The notes: generated from the letters alone by a model not told the origin. A stretch of DNA of 64,000 nt from Octopus bimaculoides (GCF_001194135.2 NC_068994.1:41168814-41232813), one strand, 5' to 3'. Shown: positions 5,640-56,907, counted from the stretch's first letter. Numbers and translations: made by a program.

Positions 5640-6489
5640 TTATTATTATTATTATTATTATCAATAGGGCATAGTTTCATCTGACCCATGTGAGTATATA
5701 AAGTATATGATAAAATGTTAATGAATGATTGTGATTATATATCATTATTATTTACCATCATCGTTGTTTTAACATCCACATTTTCCTACAGCCTTATGCT
5801 TTTCCGCTCACCAACTCTCATCTATTTTCAAGCAAGTAATAATTCAGCATTGCCAAGGATGTTTACATGAATGATTGAAGAGAAGTAACTTCATTTGTAT
5901 AACTGTGATTTTCATTTACAACTATTGTGCAATGCCAAAACATGGACAACCAAACACACATACATTTCAAACACATAATTATACATATACAGTAGACTTC
6001 TTTCAGTTTCCCTTTACTAAATCCACTCACAAATTTTTGACTTGCCTGAAGCTATAGTAGAATACAATTTCCCAAAGTACTGCACACTGGGACTGGACAT
6101 AAAACCATATACTTGGGAAGTGAACCTCTTAAGAACAGTAGTGTCTGCACACGCACACGTGCGCACACAATAATGATGATGATGATAATAATAATAATAA
6201 GAAGAAGAAGAATAAGAACAACAACAACAACAACAATAATCCTTGGATGGAATTTATAAACATTTAATTCCATTCAAAGATTATTGTTATTACCATTATA
6301 TTTATCCTACATTATATTGGTACAGCATGATGCAACCTCAAAATACTGGTTCACCAGTCATCATCATTAGACAATGGCCAGCATAATTCAATAGGAGATT
6401 TATTTGTATATTCAAAATGTTTCCCATAAACAAATTTAGAAGATTATATATATATATTATAGGTGCAGGAATAGCTGTGTGGAACCACT

Positions 6490-8790: not shown

Positions 8791-8994
8791 GGCACCAGCC
8801 ATGTATGTATATACATATATATCAATATATCTATATCCATATATCAGTATCTATCTATCTATCTATCTATATATATATATATATATACACATCCACACAC
8901 CCATACACCTACACACAAATAAAGAATATTTACCCACCAACATAGTGTTGAGCACTCATTCACATTGTTCAATATTAAAATGTAAATGTATATA

Positions 8995-9240
8995 TCATCA
9001 TTTAACGTCTGTTGTCCATGGTGGTATGGGTTGAACGGTTTGACCAGGGCTGGTAAGCTGGAAGGCTGCACCAGGCTCCAGTCTGATTTGGCACGATTTT
9101 CTATGGAAGGACATCCAGCCATAGAAAGCCATGCCAAATCAGACTGGAGTCTGGTGCAGCCTTTCAGCTTACCAGCCCTGGTCAAACCGTCCAACCCATG
9201 CCAGCATGGACAACAGACGTCAAATGATGATGATGATGAT
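8995..9240. repeat. Fold-back (inverted duplication) of a family D SINE 3' end
   Basis: ~110-bp arms (8995-9106 vs 9119-9240) around a 12-nt loop. The ORF track shows near-identical peptides on both strands here. Confidence 0.9.
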
Positions 9241-9282
9241 GATATATATATACATACAATACTTAAAAAACTTATACAAGGT

Positions 9283-9384
9283 ATGTGTTTTGCCAGTTCA
9301 TGGGCAGGCTGCGATTATAGGAATAAAAGAATATATTCTCTTACACCTATAATTGCAGCCTGCCCATGAACTGACAAAACACAT
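9283..9384. repeat. Near-perfect loop-less palindrome (51-bp arms)
   Basis: Symmetry centre between 9333 and 9334 (GAATA|TATTC), with 5 non-Watson-Crick positions in 51. Confidence 0.9.
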
Positions 9385-10995
9385 GACTTGTGTATGTGTG
9401 TTTGGTATTGTGTATATCTCTCAGACTGCTTCTCATATATATTTTGAATTTGTGTGTGTGTGCATGTGTGCATGTGTGTGTGTGTGACCATTTTTTTTAC
9501 TTGGTAGTGGTTTAGCAGAATGAGTAGAACATGGGACAAGTTACCCACAGTATTTAATTACATTTCTTTTATGATCTCTAGTTCAAATGATACCAAGGAC
9601 AATTTTGCCTTTTGTCCTGTGGTCAATAGAATAAATTACAATCATGCACTGAGGTCAGTTTAATATTCCTATAAAGCTTCTGAGGTGTGAATAGAATCCA
9701 TAACATGTTAGACTGAGTCTCAATCTACCTTTCTCTCTTATTTTTTGCTCTCCCTGTTTTTACCCTCTCTCCTTTTCTTTTCTCCCTCTCCGATAAATTA
9801 AAGTTTCCTCAACATATTGAAAGAAAGGAGAGTAACAAATTAATAATCATAATTTACAACAATCAATCTTTATTCCATTGTCATTACAATAGACTTGTCT
9901 ACTTCACTAAAGGCAAAAATGATAACATTACGTTTCACAAATCCACATATTCTTACCATTTAATCAGTCTTTCTTCTCTTCAATACTTCAAGACTTTCTT
10001 TGACAATCACATCTTCCTTCACCGATTGCCAGAGTTGCCAAATAAGATTATTTGTGTTGTTCAATAAACTATAAAAAAAAATCAAAAACAAGAACAAAAA
10101 TGGAAGGCAAATGTTGTCATCTGAAATGAAATGAAATGCAATGAAATGTTATTTTTATCATTTTATTTGTGTCACTCGAATAAGTCCAGCCATCTTCACT
10201 ACCCTCAATCAACATGCTACATCACTTCCAATGCTTATTGATGAATGTAAACCACAACTTGCAGCTTTCACTTATTCTAATGAAATTGCCTCAGGCCTCA
10301 CTCATTCTATTTGGATAATTATTTTAGAAAATCTGATGGGGGAGGAAAGTGGGGGTGTTATGCGTCTTCTGATCAAAAGTCAAGAATATCAGAAGGAAGA
10401 TGGAAAGAGAAGATGAAATGAAAGATCGAATGAATGAATGAATGAATAAACAAATGAATGGAATAAAATAACATAAATAAATAAATATAATTTGGAAAAT
10501 GCAGAAATCTAATGAAAATGACTCAGGTTTAGTTCTTAGTGAGATTTTGTCTTGAGATCCATCTCAAGTGATCTCTGTTGACTGGACAAATTATTTATAC
10601 CTCTGATTCCCAAATGCATTGTGTCAAGAATAACATTACATTTCCTGCACTCCTTGTGAAAGTGGACACAGGAAATAAATAAAATATCAAAGAAGCGGAA
10701 AAGAAAAGGAAGAGCCACAAGAGAATCACAAATTGTAGATAATAAAACAACATCAACAACAACAACAAAAGAAACTACAACAGCAACAATTCCAACAACA
10801 CTGACCACATAAACAACCAGAAAAACATTAACAACAATAACATAATAATGCTGTTGAAGTGATAGTAATGTTGAGAGCAAAAAACAAAAGAAACTCATTT
10901 GACTGGAAAAAAAATAGACTTTTAAAACTGAACTAGGAATGAAGTTATTATAGACGTTTCACTCCGTCTGTCTTGGTGTTCCAGTCTGTCTCTCT

Positions 10996-23088: not shown

Positions 23089-23315
23089 TTACACATTGAG
23101 GGAAGTTGATGGAAACATTTTCTGTGGTATTTCAGGTAGGGGCTTAGTGCAAAACATTGAACCAGATATTGGCTTTGAAGACAAATTAGAACTGCTACCA
23201 TATTCCATGTTGTCATTTGTTTCTCTGTACATAAAATTTTGATTCTCAATTGATTTACTCAAAGATTTGCAAGATGTTTTTCTATTCTGGTGTTTGATGG
23301 GAAACGCATAAATAT
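23089..23315 (-). CDS. PCDH: Protocadherin terminal coding exon 3 (cytoplasmic), 227 nt to stop
   Basis: Strong acceptor CTTTTTATTTCTTTTTCAG|. In phase 1 it reads (D)IYAFPIKHQNRKTSCKSLSKSIENQNFMYRETNDNMEYGSSSNLSSKPISGSMFCTKPLPEIPQKMFPSTSLNV-stop with no internal stop. The phase matches the exon 2 donor. AATAAA hexamers follow on the minus strand around 22841-22910. Confidence 0.8.
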
Positions 23316-23404
23316 CTGAAAAAGAAATAAAAAGCCACTGTAATTAATAAATTCAATGCCTGTTCATTAGTTCATGTTTTAAGATTTCATTCCAGCTAAC
23401 TCGT

Positions 23405-23975
23405 TACTTATCTTTTACTTTTAACTAGCTTCAGTCACAGAATTGCAACCATGCTGAGACACTATCTTGAAGGGGTTAGTTGAACAAATCGATCCCAGTC
23501 AATTTGTTCAACTTAATCTTTATTTTTTTAAGCCCGATACTTGTTCTGCAGGGTTTTTGTTTTTGCTGAACCACCAAGTTACAGGTTAAGAAGCTTGCTT
23601 TGCTACCATACGGTTCTAGGTTCAGTCCTGCTGTGTAACAACTTGAGCAAGTGTCTTCTGCTATAGCTCTGGGCTGACCAATGCTTTGTGAGAGAATTTG
23701 GTATGTAGGAACTGTGTGGAACCCCATCATGTGTGTGCGTGTGTGTTTTTGTGTATGTGGTTGTCCACTTTCAACCACCACAACCACTTGACAATTGTTA
23801 ATGGTTTGTTTTCAGCCCCTGTAACTTCGTAGCCCAACTAAAACGACTGTTAGAATAAGTACCAGACTTAAAAGAGATGTACTGGGGTGGGGGTGGGATC
23901 AATTAGTTTCATTAAACCCTTGAAGATAGTGCCCCAGCATGGCCACAGTCTAGTGACTGAAATTAGTAAAGAGAA
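23405..23975. mobile_element. Two family A SINE pieces in opposite orientation (intron 2)
   Basis: Minus-strand tail at ~23405-23585 abuts a plus-strand full copy at ~23585-23975. Confidence 0.7.
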
Positions 23976-24454
23976 AATGAATGAGAAAAGAAACCCTATT
24001 TGTTTCATGTATAATAGTATAATAAAATCTAATCCAGATTTACAGTCTGCTTAGAAGTAATTCTTTATTTTTCTCTTAATTCTGAGGATTATAAAACCTT
24101 GTTTTGAAATGGCTTAATCTGAAAACAATTTATATTCTGAATGTGATATTAATAAGAAAGAAATAATAGTACAGAATCAAATATTTAGGAATCTCTATGG
24201 ACAATAATATCATATGATAAAAAGATCAGAAAAAAATAAACAATATTTTCAATAATGTTATCATAATTAATGTAAGAATTGAAAATATGAGTAAAACTAT
24301 TTAGGTGGTGAGAAATTTTGGCAAACATGAAAGACAGCTTGCAACATATTTCAGTCATATTCTGGCCACATCAACAAAACCTTCTCCAAAATGATAATAA
24401 TAATAATAATAAGAAGAAGAAGAATAGTAATAATAATAATAAGTATCAAAGGCA

Positions 24455-24710
24455 GCAAGCTGGCAGAAATGTTAGCACACCAGGCGAAATGCTTAGTGGT
24501 ATTTTGTCCATCTTTGCAAGAAGGTGGTGAGCTGGCAGAAACATTAGCATGCTGGGTGAAATGCTTAGTGGTATTTCGTCTGTCTTTATGTTTTGAGTTC
24601 AAATTCTGCCGAGGTCAACAAAATAAGTACCAGTTGCATACTGGGGTTGATCTAATCGACTAGCCACCTCCCCCAAAATTTCGTGCCTTGTGCCTAGAGT
24701 AGAACAGAAG
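24455..24710 (+). mobile_element. SINE family B (GGCAGCAAGCTGGCAGAA... tRNA-like head), partly duplicated head
   Basis: GAGCTGGCAGAA..TTAGCA..GGG.GAAATGCTTAG.GGTATTTCGTC..GAGTTCAAATTC.GCCGAGGTC; the family also occurs near 25830, 37770, 38225, 41790, 49170 and 61480. Confidence 0.75.
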
Positions 24711-24734
24711 AATAAAATGTATCAGATGCCCTTC

Positions 24735-24965
24735 TTCAGCTACAGGGTCATAAGGCCAGTTTCCCAGATTCTGTGGCATAAGAACTCCTACAGATAAACA
24801 TGATGCCAGCCCATTGCTGGACTACTTATTTCTGATAGCTGAGTGGACTGAAGTGAGGTGAAATGAAGTGTCTTGCTCAAGAACACAATGCATCGCCTGG
24901 TCCAGGAATCGAAACCACAATCATACAATCATGGATGCAACACCCTAACCACTAAGCCACATACC
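24735..24965 (-). mobile_element. SINE family C, minus-strand copy (intron 2)
   Basis: Reverse complement reads TGGCTTAGTGGTTAGGGTGTTGCATCC...GTTTCGATTCCTGGACCAGG...GTGTTCTTGAGCAAGACAC. Confidence 0.8.
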
Positions 24966-26496
24966 TCTGCCATGTCAATGAAGGAATAATCATTAAATCT
25001 CTAAATAACTTCTAAGAAGTTTGGTTGAATTTTCCATATTAAATCCCCATTATAAACTTTGCTATATTGGCTTCTACCTACTGTAATATTTTCCAGCCTT
25101 ATTCTCCTTTATTCTCATGTAAATTAGGTATGGTTTCAAAATAATAACTGACATATAATTAGAAGTGTTAAATCATAAATATTTAGATGTTCATAGAATA
25201 ATATGTACCAAAACATCAATATTTAGTGGTAAGGCATCAATATTTTCACTTCAAAGAAAGACAGGATAGAAATGAAGAAGAAACTATATACAAGATGGTA
25301 TTAACATAATTAATGCAAGAAGAATTGAAAAGTAAAGTGACAAATTTTGGTAAATATAGAAGACAATTCGTGACATATTTCAACCTAGTTCTGACCTTAT
25401 TATCAAAGTAAGGCTTCTTTGTACTTGATGAATCGGTGAGGTAAAAATCTCTCTGTATGTGTATAAAATTGTACATTGGCTGGTGTAGTAAAACAGAATT
25501 GTTTAGAAAATCATTAATTCAGGGATGCTAGCTGCATGGAAAACAGTAGTCAATTTACTGCTAATAAATCTAATGCAAGGATTGTTGATGGTCTGTGTAA
25601 ATATTTACATCTGTGAAGCCATTGAATTGTTCTAACATATTTTAGTAAATCCTTGGGCAAGAAAATAACTTCTTTTTCTCTCTGGATGGCAAAAACATAT
25701 CTATGAGGATGAAGATATCAGTGGAATGACTTAAAAACAAATGCTTAAAAGCCCCATAGGAATCTATTAAATTATGCCAACTTAGGCAAAATGATATAAA
25801 ATAAGCGTTTTTCAGTTATAAAATATATCCTTTTTATTATCGGCACAAGGCCTGAAATTTTGTGGGAAGGGTTAATTGATTGTATTGACTCAAGTTCTTA
25901 GCTAATTTCATCAACCCTGAGAAATGAAAGGCTAAGTCAACCTTGGTGGCATTTGAACTCAGAACATAAAGATAGATGAAATGCCACTAAGCATTTTGTT
26001 AAATGCTTTAACAATTGATTTCAAATTTTGACACAGGCCTGCAATTTGCAGGGAGGGCTAAGATGATTATATCAACCCTGGTGCTCAACTGGTACGTATT
26101 TTATTGACCCTAAATGGATGAAAGGCTTGGTGATATTTGAACTCAAAATGTGATGACAGATGAAATGCTGCTAAGCATTTTGTTTGTGTTATTCTAAAGT
26201 AAACTCTAGATCATAATTGATTTCTTTTAATTGGAAATATTTCATAGATTTGAATACAGGCATGTGGTTTGAAGTTCACTTCACAACTGTATTGCAGAAC
26301 ATTTTTTTGTAGTTAAGTTGACTGAGCTATTTGGGAATTAAATGCTACTTGAGACAGCATATTAACTGCTAATTTCTTAGTTAATTGTTTGATACCCAGT
26401 CTACCCAGCCAACAATTCTCTTAAACTGAATCCATACTAACATTAGAAATGTCAAATAATAAATAAAAAAAAGCTAATAGTAATTCTATAACTTAC

Positions 26497-26662
26497 CAAG
26501 AAGTTCTTCATAGTGATTAGCATCTGCTTCAGTCCAGCCATGTCCAGTGTAATTACAGGAGGATACCTCTGACATTTCATTGTAATTTCCAAGAAATTCT
26601 GGCTTAAAAGAACTTTGTATTCTTGGCCCATCATATATTATGACCATATCATCAAGGAAGTT
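26497..26662 (-). CDS. PCDH: Protocadherin coding exon 2 (cytoplasmic), 166 nt, phase 0 to phase 1
   Basis: Acceptor TTTTGAAATTTATAG| and donor CTTG|GTAAGT. Open in phase 0 for all 55 codons: NFLDDMVIIYDGPRIQSSFKPEFLGNYNEMSEVSSCNYTGHGWTEADANHYEELL. The phase matches the exon 1 donor. Confidence 0.85.
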
Positions 26663-27245
26663 CTATAAATTTCAAAACAAGTTTTATTAAATTTCAAACT
26701 AGACGATTTAAAATCATTCACATCTAACAGAAAGAAAAAAAACTAACTCATTCAGATCTTAAATAATAACTAGGAGTAAGACATCACCAAATCAACGTAT
26801 AAGCATTGATGATAATTAGTTGCATTTACATTGTGAGATTGTGACATCAGATCTTAAGGTGTTGGGCTTTATGAAAAAGGCAAAGGGAAAAACCAAAACA
26901 AATGGCAATGTGTGATGAAGCAGATCTATCAAATACAAAAGAATGGAGTGGGGGAAACAAAACAAAAACATCAAAACACTGATGATGACAATAAACAACA
27001 ATGACAGCTATCAGAATTTGAGGTGGATTTTTTTGCAGTCAAACGTCTTTCCTGTCACCAACATATATTTGTGTGTGCGCGCATGTGTGTGTGCACGCAT
27101 GTGTGTGTGTATGTGATAAGGGGGCTGCTAGTTTATATCTTATCACATGTATTGGATTGTTTCCTTCAGAAAACCCTTTTAGGTGTTAGTGACTGCCCAT
27201 CATGCTGAGCTTTGTAAATCAAGATCAACTTGATCTAAGATCAGA

Positions 27246-27429
27246 GGTTCCATTCTCATTCCTATTTAACCCACAGTCCAGCTTAGTATTACACACACAC
27301 ACATATTTATATATATGTGTGTGTATGTAAGTATGTATGTATGTACATATATAAATGTATGTATGTATGTATATGTATATATGTAATATAAAGCTTAACT
27401 GTGGGTCAAATATGAATAAGAATGGAACC
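27246..27429. repeat. Inverted repeat (~48-bp arms) enclosing a microsatellite (intron 1)
   Basis: 27246-27293 vs the reverse complement of 27382-27429, about 7 mismatches. The spacer is (CA)/(TA)/(TATG)n. Confidence 0.8.
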
Positions 27430-29280
27430 CACAGAGAAGTTCTATGATACTTAAATTTATTTCAGTTCTGATTCATGTAATATATTTAATCTTTACTTGT
27501 TTCAGTCATTTTGTATGGCCATGCTGGGGCATCAGCCTCAGTACTTATTTATGTATTTATTTATGAATCAAAGTTCCACTGCAGTGGTGGTGGTGGTGGT
27601 GATGATGATGCAAGGGGCTGCTACACAGTTTTTGTCGACCAAGTTCCACTCAGAAAGTACAGGTTAACCCATAGCTATTGTAGAAGATACTCAAACAAAT
27701 TGCTGTGCAGTGAGATTGGACCCAGTAACCTGTTGCTGTGAAGCGAACATCTTAACCACACAGCCATATCTCTGCCTACAGTTTGTTCTTTGATCAAGCA
27801 CATTACCTTTACTCCTTATCAATCTCCTTCCAATGATGGTAATAATAATTATAACGATTGCGGTAGTTTGTAATATTAATACTTGTTCATAAAAAAATAA
27901 TACTCAAAAACATTTCAATAATATTTCTGTTAATGACAAAGACAGGAAAAAGATATAATACTTCTTAAGTTTGCATTTCTTTGATCTTTCTATATTATAA
28001 CCATGATGCAGTTTATTTCGTATGATCACAAATTGTATCTGAAATAGCTCATCATATTGTTTGTCCTCTTATGAAAAGAAAAAAGAAAAGCAAATCAGTC
28101 TTAAATATATTTCAAAGAAAATATAATACATTCCAATAATATTCCTGTAATTTTACAAAAGTATTTATCAATATTCTATGTATTACTGTCATTGAGATAT
28201 TCCTCCCCTCCACACTTCCAGAATTTTTTATATTTAAATGGTAATTAATTCTTAGCTTAACTATAATTCCTTGTCTTGCAAGATTTCAATTTTACAGTTG
28301 ATTAATCATTTTCATGCTGTTTTTTTTATCTTTATATATGTGTATGTACATATTTACATGTATGTAATAAAATAAATGTAGTATATACCAAATAATATTT
28401 GTATTTTGCAAACCAATCATGTCTTTCATTTATTTTACAAATGTGTCTATGTGCGTGTGTGTTTGTGTGTGCCGCCTGATTGGTTCCTGTGACAGTGGTA
28501 TGTATAAAGCACCATTCGAGTGTGGTCGATGCCAGTGTCAAGTGACTGGGCCCCGTGCCAGTGATACGTAAAAAGCACCCACTACACTCTGGGAGTGCTT
28601 GGCGTTAGGAAGGGCATTCAGCTGTAGAAACCTTGCCAAATCAGATTGGAGAGACAAAGAAATTCAGGGAGAGTTGATGATGTTTTTATTACAAGTAGTA
28701 GTGTTGATGGTGACAGTGAGAGTAATAATAAGAGAGTGAGAAAGAGTGGGTATGTGAGAGAAAGAGGAATTGAACACAATTCATTTACACACACATTTAG
28801 CTTTTTTGTGATTGAAATGGGGTGATAGTAATAATAGTTGTGATAGAGGCAGAGATGGCGGTGATGATGGTGGTGGTGGTGGTAGTGGTAGTAGCCGAGG
28901 CGGTCAGGGATGATGGTGAGAGTAAGTGATGTGAAAGACAGTGGTGGTGGTGGTAGAGGGGAAGGTAGCGAAGTCAAAGGTATTGATGGTGGTGGCGTCA
29001 GAAGCCTGAATGGTGTGTGTACAGCAGAGATGGTGGTGATGGTAGTTGTACTGCTGTTTATCATGCAACTTTACAATAACTTTCAAATCAACAAATTATA
29101 TCATTGTTTTGATGAAAATTGTTCATTGCTTGAAAAATATTGTTCAAGTTTAATAAAATTTAAGATGTACTCAATGCATGAAGAGTCATTGTTGGGCCCA
29201 AGGCCTAACGAAGAGCCCTCCACAGGAGCTAGCTTAAAAGCCACCTGATATATATACATATATATGCATATAGCGAAAGT

Positions 29281-29560
29281 GCTTCATGGCTTAGTGGTTA
29301 GGGTATAAGGTTCATGATCATGAGGTTGTGAGTTCAATTCCCACCAACACATTCTGTTCTTGAGCAAGACACTTTATTTCATATTGCTCCAGTCCACTCC
29401 ACTGGCAAACATGCATAGCACCTGTATTTCAAAGGGCCGGCCTTGTCATGCTGAATCTCCCTGAGAACTACATTAAGGATACACATGTCTGTGGAGTGCT
29501 TGGCCACTTGCCCATTTTCATTAGCAGGCTATTCCATTGATTGGATCAACTGGAACCCTC
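29281..29560 (+). mobile_element. SINE family C, plus-strand copy (intron 1)
   Basis: TGGCTTAGTGGTTAGGG...GTTCAATTCCC...GTTCTTGAGCAAGACAC...CAGTCCACTC. Confidence 0.8.
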
Positions 29561-30076
29561 ATCGTCAGAACTGGTAAATGAACATCACTTTTATACATGT
29601 GATGTTGTTCGTTTCTAGTCTTCCATGGAAAATATGTCTGATCATAGGAAGTATCAGCTGGAAGCAGGTGAGTGTTGGTGACAGGAAGGTCATCCAGAAA
29701 CAGAAAATTTGATTCAACAAACCCCATCTGACCCATGCAAGCATAGAAAAGTGGACGTTAAAATGACGAGGACGATGATAATATTTGTATATATCTGTAT
29801 CTATACTCTCACACACATACTTATATTTAGTGAACTCACTTGTCATAAATGATAGATGAAAGCTCTGCAACTTCTTGCTGAAACACCTGCACAGATGATT
29901 TGCTTATAGTGATTAAATGCTTGTGTTGTTTAATAGCTCACATGTTTGTTTCAAATTGACATTACCTGTAGAGGTGCATGATATGCTACATATCTGAAGG
30001 ATGTGGCCACAGAGCAATGTGAAATTAAGTTTTTTTGCATATGAGTGCAACAACTCCACCCACTAGGTCACACATC

Positions 30077-30108
<32 letters not shown>

Positions 30109-31205
30109 NNNNNNNNNNAATAATAATAAAAAGTAACAACAAAAGAATGAGACTTTGATATTAGATAAATATATGATTATTTATATATGTTATAATTTAG
30201 AACAAACAGTAAAAGGTTGTCATTATAATCTTTACTCGGAGTTTCGAATGTCGGAGCAAAGAGCTACGATACATTCTCACTGGCTATTAATGGCAACACA
30301 CTCCAATTTCATCTGGCAAGGTTTATACAGCTGGATGCCCTTCCTAATGCCAACCACTCAGAGAGTGTAGTGGGTGCTCTTTCACATGCCACTGGCACAG
30401 GTGCCAGTCAGGTAGTACTGGCATTGCCATTGATATATATGAAAGAGCATGACTTAAATTTATTCCAACCTTACTGGGTTTCCTAATATATAATATATAT
30501 GTACATAACTAATTTAGAGACGAACCACTACTCTACAACTCAGAACCCGTCCAAATCCATGCTGTAAGGCATATACCATCTTAATATATCTAAGATTTTA
30601 ATCTAAAAATTTAAATTAAATAACATATATAAATAAATCATAGAAATATTAATTTAAAAAATTTTTAAAGTCAAATTTATAAATTGGACAGTAAAAATTA
30701 ATACGATAACATACAGTATGGAAGTCTAAATGTAGAAAATTAGTGCTAGTACATAGACTATGCGCGTTTCATGACTGAAATAGGACTATATAAAATCATA
30801 ATCAAATTTTATCCGAGTTCATTAGAACGGGGAGATGATTTTACTCCCCAAATCAGACACTCTTCAGGTCAAATCCCTAAGAAAATACCTAAAATCATTC
30901 AGAGAATAAACATAAACATGAGAAATAAAAATATATATAAAGAGACAAAATCTGTAAACTAATCCCTACATTAACGGTATTAATATAATTATTAAGAGTT
31001 ACAATCTAAAAATATTATAGTATTATAGTAAACAAGGTTAAAACATTATGGAATAAGTAGATAATAGTAAAAAAAAATGTGTTAGTGTACAAAGTTACTA
31101 AAAGACGGATGTCAATATTGTTTATAAAATTAAAATACGAAAACATGATTTATCTGCCGGCTGGTGACTGTAGATTAAACCAACATGTGCTATAGAATTT
31201 ATACT

Positions 31206-31655
31206 AAAAGGTCACGTGATAAATATGGCGTATATTACCCAGAAGTACCTGCGTATTATAATTACTAAAATAATAACGAAAATATCGAATAAGAAAATCT
31301 ACCTAAAATAAAAAAGATTCTTGAGGATTAAAAATACTAAAATACTTAAACTTGCAAATTAACGCAGAGTAATAACTACTCACATACGAAAATTCTATAT
31401 TACGTAAATAATGCTATGAAAATAAATACTGAAAAGTCACGTGATAAATATGGCGTCCATTACCAGAGGCAAGTACGTGTTATAATTACTAAAATAATAA
31501 CGAAACTATCGAAAAAGAAAATCTACCTAAAATAAGAAGTTTAATGAAGATTAATAATACTAAAATACTTAAAACTCTCAGATTTACACAGAATAATAAC
31601 TATACCAAATATGAAAGTTATATATTACTTTAATAATGTTATGAAACATTTTAAA
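31206..31655. repeat. Two-copy tandem repeat, period ~225 bp
   Basis: GTCACGTGATAAATATGGCG at 31211 and 31436; the following ~200 bp align (TATAATTACTAAAATAATAACGAAA, AAGAAAATCTACCTAAAATAA, ATACTAAAATACTTAAA). Confidence 0.85.
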
Positions 31656-31959
31656 AGACTGCTTATATTATCGTTGAATACTTAAAGTAAAGGAAGTTAT
31701 ATGTTCCAATTTTGTATAATATTGTGATGATTAAAGTGTATTCTAACCCTAATTTGATGTCTTTTACGCTACTGATCATAACTATAAGTTGGTATTTAAT
31801 ACTAGGTTTAAATAAATAAATTAGTTATCTAAACTTATTATATAAGTAATTTAATTTATGTCTGCATTGAATATTACGTTTATCATGGGAGTTAAAGAAT
31901 TTGTTATTAGCTAATGATATCTCTTTAAATTCGTTAGTACATAATATATATATATATAT

Positions 31960-32165
31960 TTCAATATGTGACCGCGTGTGTATCGTTGGTAATTTTCTTT
32001 CTCCGTCTTCCCTTCTGTGGACGTTTTCTATATTTCTGATGAAGAGCCTTGCTCGAAAAAATCCTCTTTCTTTTCTTTCCTTTCCTGAGCGTTCAATAAC
32101 ACTGTACTTATTCCACGTCCTCGCGTTGTTGCTTTTTCTTGTTTGTTCATGTTTGGATTGACTAT
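31960..32165 (+). mobile_element. Penelope-type LTR/tail fragment with degenerate hammerhead-like core
   Basis: CTGATGA-A-GAGC-CTT-GCTC-GAAA at 32036-32058 within a CpG-retaining block. The family assignment is inferred from this motif. Confidence 0.55.
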
Positions 32166-32639
32166 ATGTATATATGCATATATATATATATATGTATATA
32201 TATATATGTGTGTGTGTGTATATGTTTGTGTGCCCGTGTTTATGCCCCCAACATTGCTTGACAACAAATGCTGGTGCATTCACTTCCCCATAACTTAGTG
32301 GTTCAGCTAATAAGTCCGATAGAATAAGTACTAGGCTTACAAAGAATAAGCTCTGGTGTCGATTTGTTTGACTAAAGGTGGTGCTCCAACATGGCCACAG
32401 TTAAATGACTGAAACAAGTAAAAGAATAAGAGAATAAATATATATATAGACACATGAGTGGCTGTGTGGTAAGTAGCTTGCTTACCAACTACATGGTCCC
32501 AGGTTCAGTCCCACTGTGTGGCACCTTGGGCGAGTGTACTAGGCTTACAAAGAATAAGTCGTGGAGTTGATTTAAATAAAAAGACGGTGCTCCAGCATGG
32601 CCACAGTCAAACGACTGAAACAAATAAAAAAATATAATG

Positions 32640-32943
32640 TGTACATTATTTACATTTGACGGATATTTGTCCTCATCTTGTTTGCTGTTAACACAATGTT
32701 TTGGCTGCCTTCATCAGGTGTCTTTGGGAAATTTCGAACCTGGGTTCTCATTCCTAAGGTATTTTTCGATGTTATTATTATTATTATTATTATTATTCAG
32801 GTCACTGTCTCAGAATCTTGGGGTTAGTAGTCGTGCTCTTAACTGCTATGCCATATGCCCGTAGTGATTAAGAGCATGGGCTACTAACCCCAAGATTCCG
32901 AGTTTGATTCCAGGCAGTGACCTGAATAATAATAATAATAATA

Positions 32944-32985
<42 letters not shown>

Positions 32986-33128
32986 TCGAAAAATACCTTA
33001 GGAATGAGAACCAAGGTTCGAAATTTCCCAAAGACACCTGATGAAGTTTGGAGGGTATATCAGCCGAAATGTTGTGTTAACAACAAACAAGATGAGGACA
33101 AATATCTGTCAAATGTAAATAATGTACA
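32640..33128. mobile_element. ~490-bp palindromic element: head-to-head tRNA-like heads, (AAT)n, hammerhead-like tails
   Basis: 32640-32860 is the reverse complement of 32870-33128 apart from microsatellite length and two small deletions in the left arm. Confidence 0.9.
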
Positions 33129-33800
33129 TAGTGTACATTATTTCTCATCTCTTAAATATAGAACTGTATAACGTGTCTTGTGTGAACAAAAGAGATGTAC
33201 AACTGCTACTGTTAAGTTTAGAGCTCTACATAGATTGTCATCCTCCAGTCTGCTTCCAGTAGTGTGGTTAAGTAAGTACTATGCTTAGTAGTATTACTAG
33301 TTATGATGTACATAGCGACTGTAGAAGAAATTACAATGAAATTGTTTGTATTGTTTGTTCCTACATACCTAAGAAAAATCTGTATAAACTTGTGTTTATC
33401 AAAATTTCTCATCTCTCTTTCGCTTTCTCTCTCTATCTCTCTTGATATATATATGTGTGTGTTCATATACTTATAGCCACATACATGTACATGCATTAAA
33501 TATGTATGTTAGTATGTGTATATATGCATATGTACACACACACACACACATATACATACACATGTATGTGTATATGTACGCAACATAATTAGATAGTACT
33601 ATAAGCTTTTCAAATAAAGCTTAATTCTATGTCCAAGATAATATCTGAAAATAATACCTTACTTGCAATATGACCACATTTTTTTTATTCCTTTTGCACA
33701 AAAGATATCTCAACTTATTCTTGAAACAATATAAGAATTCCTCAAGAAATAAATGCTATTAAATCTATATGAACAAAAACTAATCAAGAAAAACACTTAC

Positions 33801-36170
33801 TTGATGTTTCCATTCTGTTTGCATCTCACTATGTATTCTGGGAGTGGAACCTTTCCAGCTGTAGGCTAACTCATGCTGCTTGCAAGATTCTTGTTTTGAA
33901 TTAAAATCCTGTGAATATGAATCATTTGCTGCAGGTTGGTATAAATGTTCCTGTTGCTTCACCCCTTTAAGTGACTGTGATGAGGCATTTTTCCTCTGAT
34001 AACACAGAAAGTTTTTTTGTTGGTTAGTTCGTACAACACAAAGTGCTGTAATTACGACCATACTCACTGAGAGCGCAAGAGCCACAAATATCACAATTAG
34101 TACAAGATAGATGCGTACACTATGGGGCTCTTGCTGTAGAAACTTGCTTGAAAATGAAGAGGTAGCATTACTAACAGTCACTTTTAAAGATAAATTAGTC
34201 GATGTGGATAAAATAGGTGAGCCACTGTCTTTAGCAATGATTTGAAGGTGATACAATCCAGCATCTTTCTGGAATAGTTGTCGTGTAAAAGAGAGCACAC
34301 CAGAGTATTTGTCAAGCTGAAATAAATTCTTCTGATTACCTGCTGATATTTCATATTGAAGAAAGGCATTAATGTTAATATCATCATCCACAGCTCTGAG
34401 AACAGTTATGTTTCTGGATCCCCAAGAGTAAAAATAAACGTCCATAATAAAATTGGAGTGACGGGGGAAAATAAAGTAAGGAGTATTGTCATTTTGGTCC
34501 AAGACAGTTACAGTTGTATTTACAGTATTATTGAGAAATGGAATCCCATTATCTTTCACAAGTATTTGAAAATTATATTCTTCTTCTTCTTCTCGGTCTA
34601 AAGCATCTGTCGTTGAAATAAAACCAAAGTCAGAAATTTCAAAAGGCAGACGTACTCCCTTCTTTGATATCAAGAAATAGGACAATTGCCCTCCTGGGCC
34701 TAAATCTAAGTCATTTGCACTGACAAGTCCAATGGGGAAATTTGGCTTCTGATTTTCATGCACGGAAAATTTAAATTCATCTTTAGAAAATTGTGGTCTC
34801 ACATCATTGATGTCTTCTAGTTCTATAATAACTGACTTGTTTGTCTCTAAAGGAGGCGTTCCATGATCTCTACAAGAAATGGTGAAATTGACACTGACTT
34901 CCAGTTCTCGATCTATTGCTTCTTTGATAATCACTTTATATTTATTTGAACCTAAACTCACAAGTTCAAATTTCTTAGCTCTGAGATTACAATAAACTTC
35001 TCCATTTTTACCAGCATCATCATCTGTAATTTTAACAAATGCAATAAAGCTTCCAATTTCAATCGCTTCAGAAATATATACCTTTTCTTCCTTTTCTTTT
35101 GAGATGAAATTTATATCTATTTTTGGCGCCTTGTTTTGTTGGTTTATAATGTTTACCAGCATCAGTGCTATGGAACTAAGAGGTGGGTTACCTTGATCTG
35201 TAGCTTTGATGAAAAGCTTGCATGACTGGTTCAATTTAGAATTGAAATTTTCTGTGAAGAAAAGTTGACCTGTTTTTTCATTCAATTGAAAAAAAGATCT
35301 ATTTATCATTGAAGTTTTTGTACTGAAGTGGTAGGAAATTTTCCCATTGTCTCCAGAATCTTGATCAATAGCTGACAATGTGGCTATTGGTTTGCTCCAC
35401 TGATGCTTATATATAACAGTTATATTGTATACATTGTGAACAAAAGATGGGACATTGTCATTAATATCTTCCACTGTTATCAAAATTTCTAACTGGCTTT
35501 TCTGTGATGGAAATCCACTATCTTCTGCAATAATTTGAATTTTATATGAATCATTTTTCTCTCGATCAATTCTTTCTTTCAGTTTTATACCAAGAGTTGA
35601 TGTGCTATCTACATTTTCAGAAACTGTGAGTTCAAATGGATCACCTTCATGTTTTAGAAGTTTGTAATTAATCTGAGAGTTCAAAGTACCCACATCTTTG
35701 TCCACTGCATTGGGTATGTGTTTAGTGATGCCTTTCCCATCACCTTCAGAGAACTGAAGTAAAATTTGGTCCTTTAGGAACTCAGGCTTATGATCATTCA
35801 CATCACTTATTATAACTTTTATTTCTAATATCTTAATAAATGATTGTTGGAACCTCACTGCAACAACAATTATTCTAGAACATTCTTTATCATATTCACA
35901 AAGAATTTCTGCATCCAAAGGTTGAATGGCATAAAGTTTACCTGTTTGGGTGACATTGAACAGATGGGAATTTGCATTACCACCCTGTTGTAATTGGCTA
36001 AACCAAATCAATTTGTGCCTGTTTGAAAGGATTCCCTTTACAGACTGGATATCAGTGGCTACATCTCCCAGATACGTAATTGGATTATTCGTCTCCTTAA
36101 CATGGTAGATAAGATCAATGCACAATGTTGTGCATACAGCTGAGAGGATTAGAAATACTTGCTTTTGCAT
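33801..36170 (-). CDS. PCDH: Protocadherin, coding exon 1 (signal peptide, EC1-EC6, TM, start of cytoplasmic tail); family-level name only
   Basis: ORF 33780-36170 has an N-terminal hydrophobic signal. Cadherin motifs are DVNDHKPEF, IDRE, DINDNVPSF, DINDVRPQF, LDRE, DQNDNTPYF and several A-x-D-x-G-x-P-type motifs. EC1 has the LDAEILC...C cysteine pair, and the TM is aa ~687-713. The whole ectodomain plus TM lies in one exon, which is typical of protocadherins. The exon ends after codon 790 at CAA|GTAAGT (phase 0, intron starts at 33800). Confidence 0.97.
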
Positions 36171-36474
36171 CTTGATGTTCCTATGTAATACATCAACATG
36201 TCCTTTTTAAAAGAAAGGCTGTACAAACCACAATTCATGCTGGAATATAAAGCAAAAAGATTACAATTTTTCGCATCAAGCAATCTTTGAGTTTCTAGTT
36301 TCTTTTCATAGCATCTTGACTTAAGCAAACATTTTATGATTCAGCCATTTTGGATTCTTTGAATGAAGCAGTTCAACATATATATTTATGAGTGTGTTTG
36401 AGTGTGCATTTGTGTATGTGATTATTTATGCATGTATATATGTTTGTATGTAGGTATACATATATACATATAGA

Positions 36475-40270: not shown

Positions 40271-41088
40271 ATTTATTTGACTTTACAAACTTTCTGTATT
40301 TACCATTTGTCAACACAACCATCATTAGTTTCCTCAGCTTCTACAGTTTCACTTTAGCAATTATATTTTGGCTAAGATTTCTATTGATTTCTATAGTCTT
40401 TCTGTATCAGTTCATATTTCCTTAATACAAACTGAATGTTTTACTAATCATAATTTCAACAGAAAGCACCAAACACTGAAATTTGTTGGTAAAAAGTTGA
40501 ATTCTAAATATAGATAAATAATAATTAACAATTTCTGTTTTCTCAAATTGTGTCTGGGAATGCACTTTGTTAGAACATTGTACAATTTTTCTTTTACATC
40601 TTGTATATAATTGGAAGTTTTGTATTTTGAAAATGATTAATGAAAGGTCAGAATCTCTGTCATTATTCATTAAAAAGAATTGTTTTACTAAAATATCTTT
40701 AAGCTTGTAGTTTTTAATGTCAGTTTCTAAGTATGACAAAAGCAAAGCTTTTGATGGTATCAGTAAACAAACTATTAATAGAGACAATATCGTATGGGAA
40801 CTTATGAAGACAGGCTTTGACTCTAACATCACCATTGTTATAATCATTATCCTCATCATCATCATTATTATTGTCGTCATCATTGTAGCATCTATTTTCC
40901 CATGATTGCACGAGTCAGATGTGGCTACACTGAGGCAGAATTTTTTACATCTGGATGTGCTTTCTTGTGTCAACCCTCGCTACTTTGTTTCCAAGCAAGG
41001 AAACAATCCTCTAATCTATTGAAGAACAAACAGCTTGGACATGATTATGCAAAAATACAATAATAATTGACATTTTTCAATGTGTGTC

Positions 41089-41126
<38 letters not shown>

Positions 41127-41413
41127 NNNNNNNNNNNNNNNNNNNNNNNNNNNNNNNNNNNNNNNNNNNNNNNNNNNNNNNNNNNNNNNNNNNNNNNNNN
41201 NNNNNNNNNNNNNNNNNNNNNNNNNNNNNNNNNNNNNNNNNNNNNNNNNNNNNNNNNNNNNNNNNNNNNNNNNNNNNNNNNNNNNNNNNNNNNNNNNNNN
41301 NNNNNNNNNNNNNNNNNNNNNNNNNNNNNNNNNNNNNNNNNNNNNNNNNNNNNNNNNNNNNNNNNNNNNNNNNNNNNNNNNNNNNNNNNNNNNNNNNNNN
41401 NNNNNNNNNNNNN

Positions 41414-41456
<43 letters not shown>

Positions 41457-41789
41457 ATATATATGCATATATATCTATGTATGTCCATACATATATGTGT
41501 GTGTGTTTATGCATGTCTTCATTGTCCTCTTCACTGTTTGACAACTGGTGTAGGTTTGTTTACATCGTTACATCCTTGCAACTTAGCAGTTTTGCATAAG
41601 AGACAAATAGAAGTACCAAACTTAACAAAACGAAAAATGTTAGGGTTGATCTGATCAACAAAACCTTTCAAAGTAGTACCCCAGAATGACTAGAGTCCAA
41701 TAACTGAGACAAGGAAAACGAAAGAAAAGAAGAATAAATGAATACCAATCTATCTCATATCTAAGGAAATATTGGTTTCACATTTTGGC

Positions 41790-43354: not shown

Positions 43355-46003
43355 CATATTTATATATATGTGTGTGTGTATGTATATATATTTAATAGTC
43401 AATATAAATGTTTCTTAGTTTGTTGATTTTGTTGTCTAGAGACAGGGATAAAGAGTAAAAGAGAGATACAGAGAGTTAACATAAAAATTGTTGGATGAGT
43501 GCACATACTTGGCTTGGTGGCAGGTAATGCGGAAAGAACACTTGCACACATAATATATATTCTAGAAACAAAAGTTATTTAAAAAGTAGAGGGAATAAAA
43601 GGAAGGGAAGAAAGAGAAAGAAAGACAGTAGAAAGACTGTGATAGGTAGAGGAGAGAAAATAGGGGAGACAGAGACTAAGGGAGAATGTAATAGAGAGGT
43701 TGTTAGAGGAGGGGAGGCAATCAACTTCAAGCATATTATGGAAGAAATTAAAGCATGTCATACTTGAAAAGTTATCTAGAAAACAAGGAAAATGGGGTAA
43801 TAAAACCACATTCATTAATTTAAAAAGTCTTTAAAGAGTTTACTGTTAAATGAGATTTCACAGAAGCATATAAATGTAAGTAAAAATGTTTTCAAATCGT
43901 CATCGTCGTCGTTGTTGATGTGAGTTTATATGAGTGCATGTGAGTGTGGGCGTGTGTATGTTTTGTAATTGTTGTACAAGCAGTGTTATTCGTTTCTGAT
44001 ATTTTACCAGAACATGTCTGTTCATAGAGAATTTACCTCAATAAATTTTGCCCAGCCCATGAAAACATGAACAAGTGAATGTGAAAACAACGATAATGAA
44101 GCTAAGTTCTTCCAAATAGTTCTTGTCAACCAAATTCCTCTCTCAAATTATTGATCAATCAGAGGTTATGGCAAAAGACATTTACCCAAGTTTTCTGCTG
44201 TAAGACTAAATCTGGAAACATACTTCTTAACCTTTCTGCCATGATTCTACTGCACTTGCCATACGTCTGTGCAAGTGTATTCTTGCATATATTAATGCAT
44301 AAAATTGTAACTCATATATTCCTGTTTTGAACCTATACAACCGTGTTTTCCCTGCAAAAAAGGCAAGTAAATATTTTTCTTCATGCAATTGTTGTTGTCA
44401 TCTATCTTCAAAAATATATGAAACCAGCCATTCTACTGTTTAATTCACCTGCACAGCTCTCATCTAATGTCTACACTCATTTCTATCTTCCTTAGTAAAT
44501 TTCTCTTCTCTGTCATCTCTAATTAGTAAGCTGACAGCTAGGTGGTACCTTTGAAGAAGAAAAAAATTCTGTAGAAAAGCCAGAGGAATCCTCGAAGTTT
44601 AGATTGAAATATCAACAGATCAAAGGGCAGAAATTATTTACAAACTATGTCTAGTGTTTCTCAAAATAAAGTTGTTTATCAATAGTTTGACTATGTTTTA
44701 ACAGTATTTGGCATTTGATATTTTGCTACAGTAATTCTATTTATTTCATGGATATATGTTTGTGTTTGTATTGCATGTATGTTTGTATTGTATATGAAAT
44801 TGCATCTACTGTGGTATATGAATATTTATTGTATGAGTTGTTATGTAATGTACCGTATATCATAAAGATTCAAAGCAAAGCTAGGAATCCATTTTCATAA
44901 ATATGATGAATGAATAATGTGTTGCACATATACATGTGGTATTGTATATGCAATTACATATATTATTAATATGTGTGTTCCAGCTGTTTATCAGTTGTTA
45001 ACATATTACAAGGCATTATTCAGTGTTGTGCTGCTGCTCATTTCTTAGTAAATAGAAAACTGGTGTTTTGATTCCTGCTGTATCTATAGAACAAAAACAT
45101 TCTGACATCCTATATCTTACTCCTATTATTCTAATGTTTTGTTTTCTGCCAAATATTTTGTTATACAATAATGTTATTTTTGTTGTTGTTTAATCCCAGG
45201 TATGAACTGATAGAACGAAATTTTGATCAGAAGCATTCCAGCCTTGATCATTTTGGCTTTTAATTTAGTTATTTCAAAGACTACATTGTCCAGTGTGTTT
45301 CCTGGTTAAGATGGTAGAAAGTTTTTTGAAGCGTGTTTGATTGTTATTTCTAACAGTAAGCTTAGTGGTGTTGCATGCTCAGGAGATAGCAGAGCCATTA
45401 TACTGAGGGTAGCAAACTGGTATCGTTCTTAGACCACCAGTAGAAATGCTGTGCAGTATTTCTTCTGATTCTCTACACACTTCATTTAAACTCTGCAGAG
45501 ATCACCTTTGCTTTTCATCCACAGGGATCAATAAGCTTAAATGCCATTTAAGTATAGCAGCTGATGTACTTGACTAACACCTTCCCTCAAAATTTACTGG
45601 CCTAGTACCTAAATTAAAAGCAGCTATTATGTGATAATTTTGCTATACATCTTCAGAACTCACCAATTAAAATTGTAGGAAGATCTGTTCAGTTAAGAAG
45701 TTTGATTTGAAGCCATGTGACTTTCGGTTTGAGTAGGTGTAGTCTATTTATACAATAGACACTTTGAGTAGATGTATTCTACAATACACATAGACCAATT
45801 AGAGTTGTGTGAGTGAATTTGAAAGAGAGAAACTGTGTGGAAGCCGATCATTTCTCTTTCTCTCATTTTCTTCCTCCCTCCCCTTTCTCTCATTATCACT
45901 CACATATATATATTTGTATGTTTGTGTGCGTGAATGTGTATAATTATATTTATATTTATGTAGTATTTGTATGTATATATATGGAAGAGGGCAAAAATAT
46001 ATG

Positions 46004-46035
<32 letters not shown>

Positions 46036-47049
46036 CGTGTGTGTGTGTGTGTGTATGTGTGTGTGTGCATGTGTGCATAATTATACATATATATGTGTAT
46101 ATTTTATTTTCTCTGTTTATTTCCTCATATTCCTTTCTGTTGAAGAGCGTAGGCTCAAAACATATAAGACTTACTCACTTTCGTGTGTTAAACTAATACA
46201 CCTGCTTGTTGTTCATACNNNNNNNNNNNNNNNNNNNNNNNNNNNNNNNNNNNNNNNNNNNNNNNNNNNNNNNNNNNNNNNNNNNNNNNNNNNNNNNNNN
46301 NNNNNNNNNNNNNNNNNNNNNNNNNNNNNNNNNNNNNNNNNNNNNNNNNNNNNNNNNNNNNNNNNNNNNNNNNNNNNNNNNNNNNNNNNNNNNNNNNNNN
46401 NNNNNNNNNNNNNNNNNNNNNNNNNNNNNNNNNNNNNNNNNNNNNNNNNNNNNNNNNNNNNNNNNNNNNNNNNNNNNNNNNNNNNNNNNNNNNNNNNNNN
46501 NNNNNNNNNNNNNNNNNNNNNNNNNNNNNNNNNNNNNNNNNNNNNNNNNNNNNNNNNNNNNNNNNNNNNNNNNNNNNNNNNACAAATATAAAATATTAAA
46601 AATGATATTAATATTTCCGAATATTAAACAAAATCAAAATTACTATAACCACGTATTATTTGAAGTTGGATTTAAAGATAAAATTTGCTATATCCAGAAT
46701 TAAAAGAACAATAAAATTCCTGGAAATGATAGAATATTAGATAAGCTGGAACTTGATAGGGAGTATGATAAAAATAGAAATATAGATAGAAGTAAATGCA
46801 TTAAGCAATCTTTTTTTTAAACTAGACTAAATTAAAACAAGAAGGTAATGATACAAGTGTGATAGTTGAAAAACCAAGTATTGAAGATGAACATATTAAA
46901 AAGTATAGATCTAACTCAGTAGATACTGAATATACGGTTGATATTAATAATAATAATAATGATAATAATAATAATATTCCAAGATTAAAGTTACTCTTCA
47001 CGAAGGTAAAGAAACAAGAAGAGCGCGACTGTTATTGGTAATAAATAGA

Positions 47050-49607: not shown

Positions 49608-50556
49608 CTTCAAAACATGTAATACATGATGTTATAACACAGTTTCAGTTTTATTGAATGCTAACATGGATTAATTAGATCTACAAATTCTACTTTCAAA
49701 CCAATACCTGTAGAAAAAAAGTCATATGAGTATATAGTAAACTATTGTTTGAAATAACAGGTAAATTTTTCACGGAAACAATTTTATCTGAGAAGCTCTA
49801 ATCATTGAAATCTGTTGAAATCTATTCTGCTAGACAATACTAACTACTGTTAAATAGATATGAAAATCAATGCTACATATTTAAAAACAAAATAGGAAAT
49901 AAAGTTTTCAAACAGCTAAAAGTCTTATTTTGGCACATTTATCTAAATACTGAACATACTATAATATTATTAATGCGTCATTTTATTTTTTTTTTTCTCC
50001 CAAAGAGTTAACTTCTAATCCAATTTCTGTATGTCCCTCGAGGCAAACTACATTTGAGATCTCAATCTGAAAGGCATTGCAGACAGAGAAGATGAAATGC
50101 AGTAGATAAGGAAACTTGAGCTTTTAAAAGGTAACTTTATTCCAAATGAGGCAATGGAGATTTTGAAAAGAAAAGAAAAAAAAATAGATAACTGTTTTTG
50201 GTATTGTTTAACAGAGTGTAATTTGATTAAAGATTATAATATATAAATATNNNNNNNNNNNNNNNNNNNNNNNNNNNNNNNNNNNNNNNNNNNNNNNNNN
50301 NNNNNNNNNNNNNNNNNNNNNNNNNNNNNNNNNNNNNNNNNNNNNNNNNNNNNNNNNNNNNNNNNNNNNNNNNNNNNNNNNNNNNNNNNNNNNNNNNNNN
50401 NNNNNNNNNNNNNNNNNNNNNNNNNNNNNNNNNNNNNNNNNNNNNNNNNNNNNNNNNNNNNNNNNNNNNNNNNNNNNNNATATATATATATATATATATA
50501 CATATGTATACATATATATTATATATATATACATACACATACACACATGCACACAC

Positions 50557-50601
<45 letters not shown>

Positions 50602-51921
50602 TATATATATATATAAGTATTTGTGTATGTAGCTATGCATGTAGATATGTATTTATATATGTATATATGCACATATATGTATATGTATATGTGTATGAAT
50701 GTATACACACACACACACATATATAATAGGTAGATAAATAGATAGATGAATAGATAGATGGATTGATAGACAGATAGATATATATGTGAACAGATATATA
50801 TATAGATATATATGTATGTATATATGTGTGTGTTATTTTATATATATATGTGCATATATAGGTATGGGTGTATATATATATATAAATATACACGCATGTA
50901 TTATCTACATATTAATATACTTATATATATTTATAAGTGTGTATATCTGTATGCCTGTATCACCATCATCTTATGTTTCTTGTTTCACTATGATTTATAA
51001 ATTTATATATTTACACATGCTTATGCACACACAAACACAAGCACACACACATGCACACAAACAGGCACGGTGGTAGACGGGATTCATTCAATTTTAGAAA
51101 TAAATAAATTATTGCAAATACATGTGTATATGATTATTTGGATATGTTGACATATATATATATGCTTGTACATGTGCATGAGTGTACATGTGCATGTATA
51201 TGAGTGTGTGTGTGTATGCATGTGTGTGTGTGCATGTGTGTGGGCATATGTGTGTGTGTGTGTGTGCGTGTGTGTGTGTGCGTGTGTGTGTGTGTGTGTG
51301 TGCTATTTAAATATTTACAAAACAATAATCTTCTGCTATTAATCTATGTAATGACAATCAAAATGCTTATTTTTGCAACAAGGCAATGAAATATAATTAT
51401 TTTCAGTTTGATTGAGGCAAACAATGCACAGATTAGCTTGTTAAAATTTCTTTTCTTTTAGATTTTAATATATTTGGACAAGTTTGATTTGTTTTGTGTG
51501 CATGTGTGTGTGTGCATGTGTGTGGGCATATGTGTGTGTGTGTGTGCGTGTGTGTGTGCGTGTGTGTGTGTGTGTGCGTGTGTGTGTGTGTTAGAATGTG
51601 ATTCTTGTAGTTTGATGTATCCTCTTGTGTGTATCTGAGTGTCAGATGGTGTGATTTATGGTTGTTTGCATGTGTGAATGCTTGGTTAAGTGTATGTAGG
51701 CATAAATCTCTGTATATGTATGCCTGTATTTGCACTTCTGTGTATGTGTGTGTACGTGTATACATATTTATATATTGTGTGATACGAAATTTGCTTCCCA
51801 ACGACGTGGTCCCTGGTTCAGCTCCACTGCATGGCACCTTGAGCAAGTGTCTTCAACTAAGCCTTCAGCTGACAAATGAATTACTAGTTGACTTTGTGGA
51901 CAGAAACTGAAAGAAGCCTGC

Positions 51922-53265: not shown

Positions 53266-53315
<50 letters not shown>
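53226..53315 (-). promoter_or_regulatory. Candidate core promoter (GA repeat, TATA box) possibly for the protocadherin
   Basis: Minus strand: (GA)n, then TATATAAG (53250-53257), with a possible start ~30 nt downstream and a CAG|GTAAAA donor at 52791/52790. Motif inference only. Confidence 0.25.
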
Positions 53316-53326
<11 letters not shown>

Positions 53327-53395
53327 NNNNNNNNNNNNNNNNNNNNNNNNNNNNNNNNNNNNNNNNNNNNNNNNNNNNNNNNNNNNNNNNNNNNN

Positions 53396-53427
<32 letters not shown>

Positions 53428-53495
53428 TAGATAGATAGATAGACTGACAGAGAGATAGATAGATAGATAGATAGATAGACAGACAGAGAGATAGA

Positions 53496-53561
<66 letters not shown>

Positions 53562-53618
53562 GATATAGATACATATACAGATTCATACATATATATATAT
53601 GTATGTGCGTGTATGTAC

Positions 53619-53655
<37 letters not shown>

Positions 53656-54108
53656 CACACACACACATGGATAACAAAATTTCTTTCATTCTCCATCTCT
53701 TAAATCCACTGATGTGTGTGTGTTTGTGTGTGAATGTGTGTGTGTGTGCACGTGTGTGTGCGCGTGCATGCATGCATGTGTGTGTGTTCATATGCTTAGC
53801 AATATATTTTCAGGATGCATACTGTGTTGATTTTTAAGCCAGTGTTCCAAGATACCATCAAAACTAATATACTGACATTTCCCAGTTACAAAAGATGTTG
53901 GATTGTCAAAACTGTACTATATTGGATTTGATTTATTCAATTATACTCTTTAAGAAGATAAGTCAAAGAATAAAAGAATGTATCCTCTCTGTAACATCTT
54001 GTACATTCTCCTTTTGCATCATTTCTTAAATTAGGAAATTAAAAATTTTAAATTATGGAATTAAAAACCCAATTACATCCTTTGCAATATATATATATAT
54101 ATATATAT

Positions 54109-56833: not shown

Positions 56834-56907
<74 letters not shown>

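Follow-up and report, generated by a model that had tools for sequence, protein, structure and literature searches.

The analyzed window (the whole stretch of 64,000 nucleotides (nt) of Octopus bimaculoides DNA, NC_068994.1:41168814-41232813, with positions counted from its first letter) contains, on the minus strand at 23089–36170, a protocadherin gene with three coding exons. With a probability of about 0.95, we consider it to be an ordinary stand-alone gene with private tail exons. The product matches a RefSeq protein residue for residue, and the orthologs share the cytoplasmic tail as well as, in Octopus sinensis and Argonauta hians, the positions and phases of both introns. The model is not new, and its layout is the usual one of the family.

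Gene Model and Public Annotation

The three exons were proposed in a first-pass annotation from the sequence; their coordinates, GT/AG ends, phases (0, then 1), joined length, and intron lengths were all recomputed and agree (Table 1). The joined exons, 2763 nt, form one open frame of 920 amino acids (aa), whose sole stop is the terminal one. The start codon, at 36170, is the first ATG in frame past the upstream stop, the open fragment beginning at 36206. Beyond the stop codon, AATAAA/ATTAAA signals follow at a distance of 180–250 nt, the first of them at 22910–22905. The borders (marked by ^) are ttatag^AAC and CTTG^gtaagt for exon 2, and ttttcag^ATAT and the TAA stop for exon 3; the tail segment encoded by exon 2 reads ...NYNEMSEVSS..GHGWTEADANHYEELL.

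Table 1. Positions of the gene parts, tail motifs, and assembly gaps in the window.
Feature	Position	Strand	Remarks
Coding exon 1	36170-33801	minus	2370 nt, aa 1-790; end CAA^GTAAGT, phase 0
Intron 1	33800-26663	minus	phase 0, nominal 7138 nt; GTAAGT donor, TTATAG acceptor
Coding exon 2	26662-26497	minus	166 nt; aa 791-845 and first base of codon 846
Intron 2	26496-23316	minus	phase 1, 3181 nt; donor G^GTAAGT, acceptor TTTTTCAG
Coding exon 3	23315-23089	minus	227 nt; aa 846-920; TAA stop 23091-23089
Transmembrane segment	34112-34032	minus	aa 687-713, IYLVLIVIFVALALSVSMVVITALCVV; single hydrophobic stretch, read from the sequence
HYEEL	26515-26501	minus	3' end of exon 2; unique among the six translated frames of the window
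KPLPEIP	23145-23125	minus	exon 3, near the C-terminus; likewise unique among the six translated frames
Assembly gap, 10 N	30109-30118		intron 1, adjoins an (AT)n microsatellite
N gaps behind artefactual open reading frames	41127-41413, 46219-46581, 50251-50479, 53327-53395, 58609-58927		

The window segment 13089–46170 is identical to positions 41,181,902–41,214,983 of O. bimaculoides CM046614.1 (GCA_001194135.2), and the gene lies at approximately 41.19–41.20 Mb of this chromosome. From the order of accessions only, we infer that CM046614.1 is the "chromosome 14" of PMC9068888. The 920-aa product is identical to the protein entered as XP_014785610.1, XP_052829057.1, XP_052829058.1, and UniProt A0A0L8FYW5 (P0121 in our set) under the name "putative protocadherin beta-18." The annotated coding sequence covers the same 13,082 nt in the public assembly, and comparison with XP_014785610.1/A0A0L8FYW5 reveals no difference. 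Since both the sequence and the coding span equal those of the annotated entry, the model is already public. Exons 2 and 3, described as hidden by the first-pass annotation, are indeed missed by a prokaryote-style list of open reading frames (ORFs), but they are present in the public eukaryotic annotation.

The expectation that an ORF-only annotation would end the protein wrongly, in VSVFLD, is borne out. Reading through the donor of exon 1 yields ...KHQVSVFLD followed by a stop, and an artefact of this kind exists in the protein database: P0123, an 835-aa entry from a related octopus ending ...KHQVSVFFDCFF..., corresponds to exon 1 read into intron 1. The mirror artefact, intron 2 read into exon 3, is seen in P0125, P0128, and P0129. 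These three short proteins match the tail profile and might have been fragments of transcripts; we rejected this, since their N-termini consist of intron translated from a poly-pyrimidine read-in, which traces them to genomic contigs, uninformative on splicing.

Domain Architecture of the Product

Exon 1 covers the protein from the signal peptide through six cadherin repeats and the transmembrane helix to the 77th residue of the cytoplasmic tail; hence, the ectodomain and the membrane span lie wholly in one uninterrupted exon. Pfam Cadherin matches in five stretches (E 6.1e-69), Cadherin_2 covers the N-terminal repeat, and repeat ends of the DxNDxxP type are seen at aa 123, 235, 344, 453, and 558. 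The N-terminus, MQKQVFLILSAVCTTLC, is hydrophobic and, as read from the sequence, a putative signal peptide. The cytoplasmic tail comprises 207 aa after the membrane span, the distal 130 of them coming from exons 2 and 3. A Pfam search with this tail gave no family; the two listed matches (E 0.1 and 0.63) are far below the cut-offs.

The product shows the features of a protocadherin: tandem cadherin repeats, a single span, a tail that matches no Pfam family and lacks the catenin-binding domain typical of classical cadherins, and an ectodomain encoded by one exon. The homology search yielded 727 matches, and the named ones among the top matches are almost all octopod protocadherins. Membership in the octopod protocadherin expansion is indicated by close homology, location on a chromosome that also carries paralogs (at 34.3 and 38.5 Mb of CM046614.1), private tail exons, and retained intron positions and phases. 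By analogy with the family in general, the product would be a type I membrane protein for adhesion or recognition in neurons.

Conservation in Orthologs

Full-length orthologs of the 920-aa model were found in Octopus sinensis (P0001, 96% identity) and Argonauta hians (P0002, 70%). The Octopus vulgaris ortholog, P0122, falls into the same 90%-identity cluster and has the same tail. The exons of O. sinensis and A. hians were rebuilt base by base, and their products equal the database proteins. In both species, the two introns interrupt the same codons in the same phases, with splice sites ...CAA/AAA^GTAAGT, YAG^AA., CTTG^GTAAGT, and TTTTTCAG^ATAT. Introns 1 and 2, nominally 7138 and 3181 nt here, measure 4928 and 7343 nt in O. 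sinensis but only 260 and 287 nt in A. hians.

The short introns of the A. hians ortholog occupy positions 5437–5696 and 5863–6149 of its locus (L003), and an A. hians paralog (L005) retains introns of 10 and 11.5 kb. Intron size thus differs greatly between genes. Among the paralogs and orthologs together, the shortest intron has 260 nt and the longest 73 kb.

Exon 2 has the same length, 166 nt, in O. bimaculoides, O. sinensis, and A. hians, and its AG/GT ends are kept. Between O. bimaculoides and O. sinensis it is 98.8% identical, while the 300-nt flanks are 61–71% identical (rough global alignments), and both differences in the exon fall at third codon positions. Versus A. hians, exon 2 shows 78% nucleotide identity, with 22 of the 38 differences at third positions. 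As judged from the alignments, this third-position bias is of the coding type. At the nucleotide level, the O. bimaculoides and A. hians genes resemble each other in the exons only, and for exon 2 the similarity ends 5 and 9 nt past the borders.

At the protein level, exon 1 is 96% identical to its O. sinensis counterpart, and exon 3 is 93% identical to that of O. sinensis and 46% to that of A. hians. Both ends of exon 3 align to A. hians at the nucleotide level, and the position of the stop codon is common to the orthologs.

Specificity of Splice-Site Criteria

The first-pass annotation had been based on AG/GT ends, an open frame, and matching phase. Exons 2 and 3 do fit these criteria, but the criteria are unspecific. 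We counted all candidates satisfying them over the 20 kb that follow exon 1 downstream: there are 967 phase-0 internal exons of at least 60 nt, 190 of them of at least 150 nt, and 27 phase-1 terminal exons of at least 180 nt. Requiring a GTAAGT donor leaves two donor sites among the internal candidates. Taken alone, the criteria are not above chance; exons 2 and 3 are singled out by homology, not by splice sites and frame.

Tail Profile and Conserved Motifs

A tail profile was built from paralogs only, leaving the orthologs out, and run on all 2030 stop-to-stop fragments that the window yields in six frames. Here, exon 2 is the sole significant match (E 1.8e-7), the next best fragment having E 1.7. 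Two short motifs recur in the family. YEEL, located at the end of exon 2, is found in 11 of 16 octopod tails. The KPLPEIP-type motif (KPLPxΦP) of exon 3 is found in 15 of 16 full-length octopod tails, with K, P, L, P, and P invariant in an alignment of seven sequences (A1). The homology of the exon 2 and exon 3 peptides to other cephalopod protocadherin tails, named in the first-pass annotation as a critical check, takes the form of the profile match for exon 2 and of the orthologs and the family motif for exon 3.

When 1.84 billion representative proteins were searched exhaustively with a profile, the tail module turned up in 28 clusters only. Ten of these were looked up, and all are from Octopus or Argonauta, or unnamed.

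Paralogs and Family Architecture

Three paralogs were mapped to the base: P0009 of O. bimaculoides, P0015 of O. sinensis, and P0006 of A. hians. Each has a first exon of 2379–2418 nt followed by a phase-0 intron after a conserved Gln codon; a second exon of 130–154 nt ending right after YEEL-x; a phase-1 intron; and a last exon with KPLPxΦP. P0009 has one extra small exon. The O. bimaculoides locus of P0151 shows the same three blocks by tblastn. These four paralogs have the same layout as the window gene at approximately 44% protein identity; most paralogs share the motifs IDLKS and WNLP..NSF, both of which are missing from exon 3 of the window gene.

The O. vulgaris GenBank protein QBA31124.1 (P0133) maps as three blocks on a paralogous locus (L007), spanning both introns. 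It most likely belongs to the 53 sequences that PMC6339937 derived from transcriptomes; if so, it provides indirect transcript support for the family architecture. Octopus protocadherins are called multi-exonic in the literature (PMC6339937; PMC9068888), and 168 multi-exonic protocadherin genes have been counted in O. bimaculoides (PMC6339937).

The layout resembles that of vertebrate protocadherins in part. Similar to the window gene, the alpha/gamma clustered genes have a large exon for six repeats, the span, and the proximal tail, followed by small exons for the distal tail, and lie in tandem arrays. However, their variable exons share three constant exons, whereas the octopus tail exons are private to each gene, and in the Pfam and profile searches the octopus tail matched no Pfam cytoplasmic domain and showed no homology to the alpha/gamma constant-region tail. 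The beta-protocadherins likewise have six cadherin repeats and a similar ectodomain, but they are single-exon genes without a distal tail. The window gene differs from them by two further conserved coding exons, and because of these the name "beta-18" is a label of similarity, not of orthology. The delta protocadherins are likewise stand-alone multi-exon genes with cytoplasmic motifs in downstream exons, although their CM1, CM2, and CM3 motifs are not found in octopus protocadherins (PMC6339937).

Alternative Readings

Several points weigh against the three-exon model with private tail exons. Exon 3 is too diverged and was not detected by the paralog-only tail profile, and phmmer with its peptide returned orthologs only; its support is limited to orthologous sequences and the short motif KPLPxΦP. 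The two junctions are predicted from comparative evidence and public gene models. In the assembly, the exon 1-side flank of the gap in intron 1 (30119–32535, 2.4 kb) has no collinear match in O. sinensis. Finally, the functions proposed below for the tail motifs are purely hypothetical.

The alternative closest to the model accepts its three coding exons and holds it to be incomplete, lacking a non-coding 5' exon, a short isoform with an alternative C-terminus, or both. We regard it as a real possibility, with the odds somewhat against it. Three RefSeq accessions for one protein sequence suggest transcripts that differ in their untranslated regions (UTRs), and a conserved acceptor-like ttatattccAG (AG 36241–36240) is located 70 nt upstream of the ATG. 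Among the paralogs, P0009 uses a fourth exon, and an isoform X2 departs from the longer form at the end of exon 1 (...KEIHQ^SDLTP, 807 versus 941 aa); however, the 90% cluster of the window gene holds no alternative protein except the read-through from another species. The count of three proposed in the first-pass annotation thus stands for the coding exons, while a non-coding 5' exon may precede them.

Two observations touch on the same subject. The 36171–36470 block upstream of the ATG (minus strand) is identical at 285 of 300 positions between O. bimaculoides and O. sinensis in a global alignment, and similarity then collapses. It contains the acceptor-like ttatattccAG and two short upstream ATG frames, and may be either the 3' part of a 5' UTR intron together with UTR, or a promoter. 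The second concerns the O. sinensis paralog isoforms P0143/P0158, where the 807-aa X2, with its terminal SDLTP, parts from the 941-aa form precisely where exon 1 ends. Since the intron starts with GT, a read-through would begin with Val; hence, X2 uses an alternative terminal exon.

Very improbable, in our view, is an arrangement of the vertebrate alpha/gamma style, in which exons 2 and 3 would be constant exons shared by several upstream variable exons. The layout is alike, some first introns of paralogs are as long as 17–73 kb, and isoform labels are attached to many of the family's RefSeq models. Still, this large protocadherin exon is the only one in the 64-kb window, 28 kb upstream of the gene included; each examined paralog has its own divergent tail exons, with no foreign large protocadherin exon in introns of up to 73 kb. 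Cephalopod protocadherins have been described as arising by whole-gene duplication, without shared final exons or multiple first exons spliced to them (PMC9068888).

A scaffold misjoin at the gap, by which exons 2 and 3 would belong to another protocadherin gene than exon 1, is more improbable still. Exon 1 does lie across the gap from exons 2 and 3, the gap being 3682 nt past the donor and 3446 nt ahead of the acceptor, and its exon 1-side flank is the one without a collinear counterpart. On the exon 2 side, however, the flank (30096–29573) is collinear with intron 1 of O. sinensis. The O. sinensis locus is ungapped, with identical exon order and strand, and the same holds for A. hians, where the whole gene is 3.4 kb; both species have full-length orthologous proteins. 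Since the gap is intronic and no coding frame crosses it, only the length of intron 1 is uncertain; given the state of the exon 1-side flank, the nominal 7138 nt do not fix the true value.

The least credible reading, a single-exon beta-like gene ending ...KHQVSVFLD with exons 2 and 3 as chance open frames, would agree with the name "beta-18," with the hundreds of chance exons fitting the splice criteria, and with the read-through entry P0123, but is practically dismissed by the conservation of exons 2 and 3 with the same borders in O. sinensis, O. vulgaris, and A. hians, by their coding-type substitutions, by the family tail motifs found only in these exons, and by the read-through peptide itself, which varies between species (VSVFLD versus VSVFFDCFF...).

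The exon 1-side gap flank, 30119–32535, carries dispersed repeats resembling short interspersed nuclear elements, 100–330 nt long, with many copies at other octopus loci. A 152-aa ORF in intron 1 (31825–32283) was rejected as a gene; it matches no Pfam family and is a translation of microsatellite and repeat sequence.

A Possible Docking Function of the Tail

Under the preferred model of a stand-alone gene with private tail exons, the distal tail may be considered a putative docking region. Of its elements, only HYEEL and KPLPxΦP are strongly conserved. HYEEL resembles pYEEI, the preferred ligand of Src-family SH2 domains, and KPLPxΦP resembles +xΦPxΦP, the class I SH3 consensus. It is conceivable, though rather unlikely, that exons 2 and 3 encode an octopod-restricted cytoplasmic module recruiting a Src-family kinase. 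Such a module would parallel, by convergence, the reported interaction of Fyn with vertebrate protocadherin-alpha, which is mentioned in PMC6339937. In the accessible part of the published account, the octopus-specific protocadherin motifs are those of EC1, EC5, EC6, the membrane span, and a PP1 site only; HYEEL and KPLPxΦP, missing from that list, seem to be undescribed.

Consequences for Annotation and Other Features of the Window

The gene model itself yields no new biology, its value being that of an annotation-quality check. A prokaryote-style ORF list cuts cephalopod protocadherins at the first splice donor and appends a false C-terminus. Studies of intracellular signalling by the approximately 170 octopus protocadherins need the full tails, because some 130 residues and the best-conserved tail motifs sit in two small exons.

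Automatic annotation of the family shows a further peculiarity. Two very long models, P0157 (6653 aa, O. sinensis) and P0161 (1785 aa, O. vulgaris), share 90%-identity clusters with either protocadherins of approximately 950 aa or a 182-aa tail fragment; several tandem protocadherin genes appear to have been fused in them.

In the window as a whole, Rfam at gathering thresholds gives nothing. The long ORFs at 40422–41654, 45971–46703, 50208–50720, 53315–53791, and 58404–59033 are artefacts that cross or adjoin the N gaps listed in Table 1, and the ORF at 56354–56947 is a translation of a simple repeat. Two adjacent near-perfect palindromes are located at 8994–9231 (118-nt arms that are 91% complementary, spacer of 2 nt) and 9250–9417 (arms of 84 nt, 82% complementary, no spacer). 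Similar peptides are obtained from both strands of these palindromes, and the pair is probably a foldback-type repeat.

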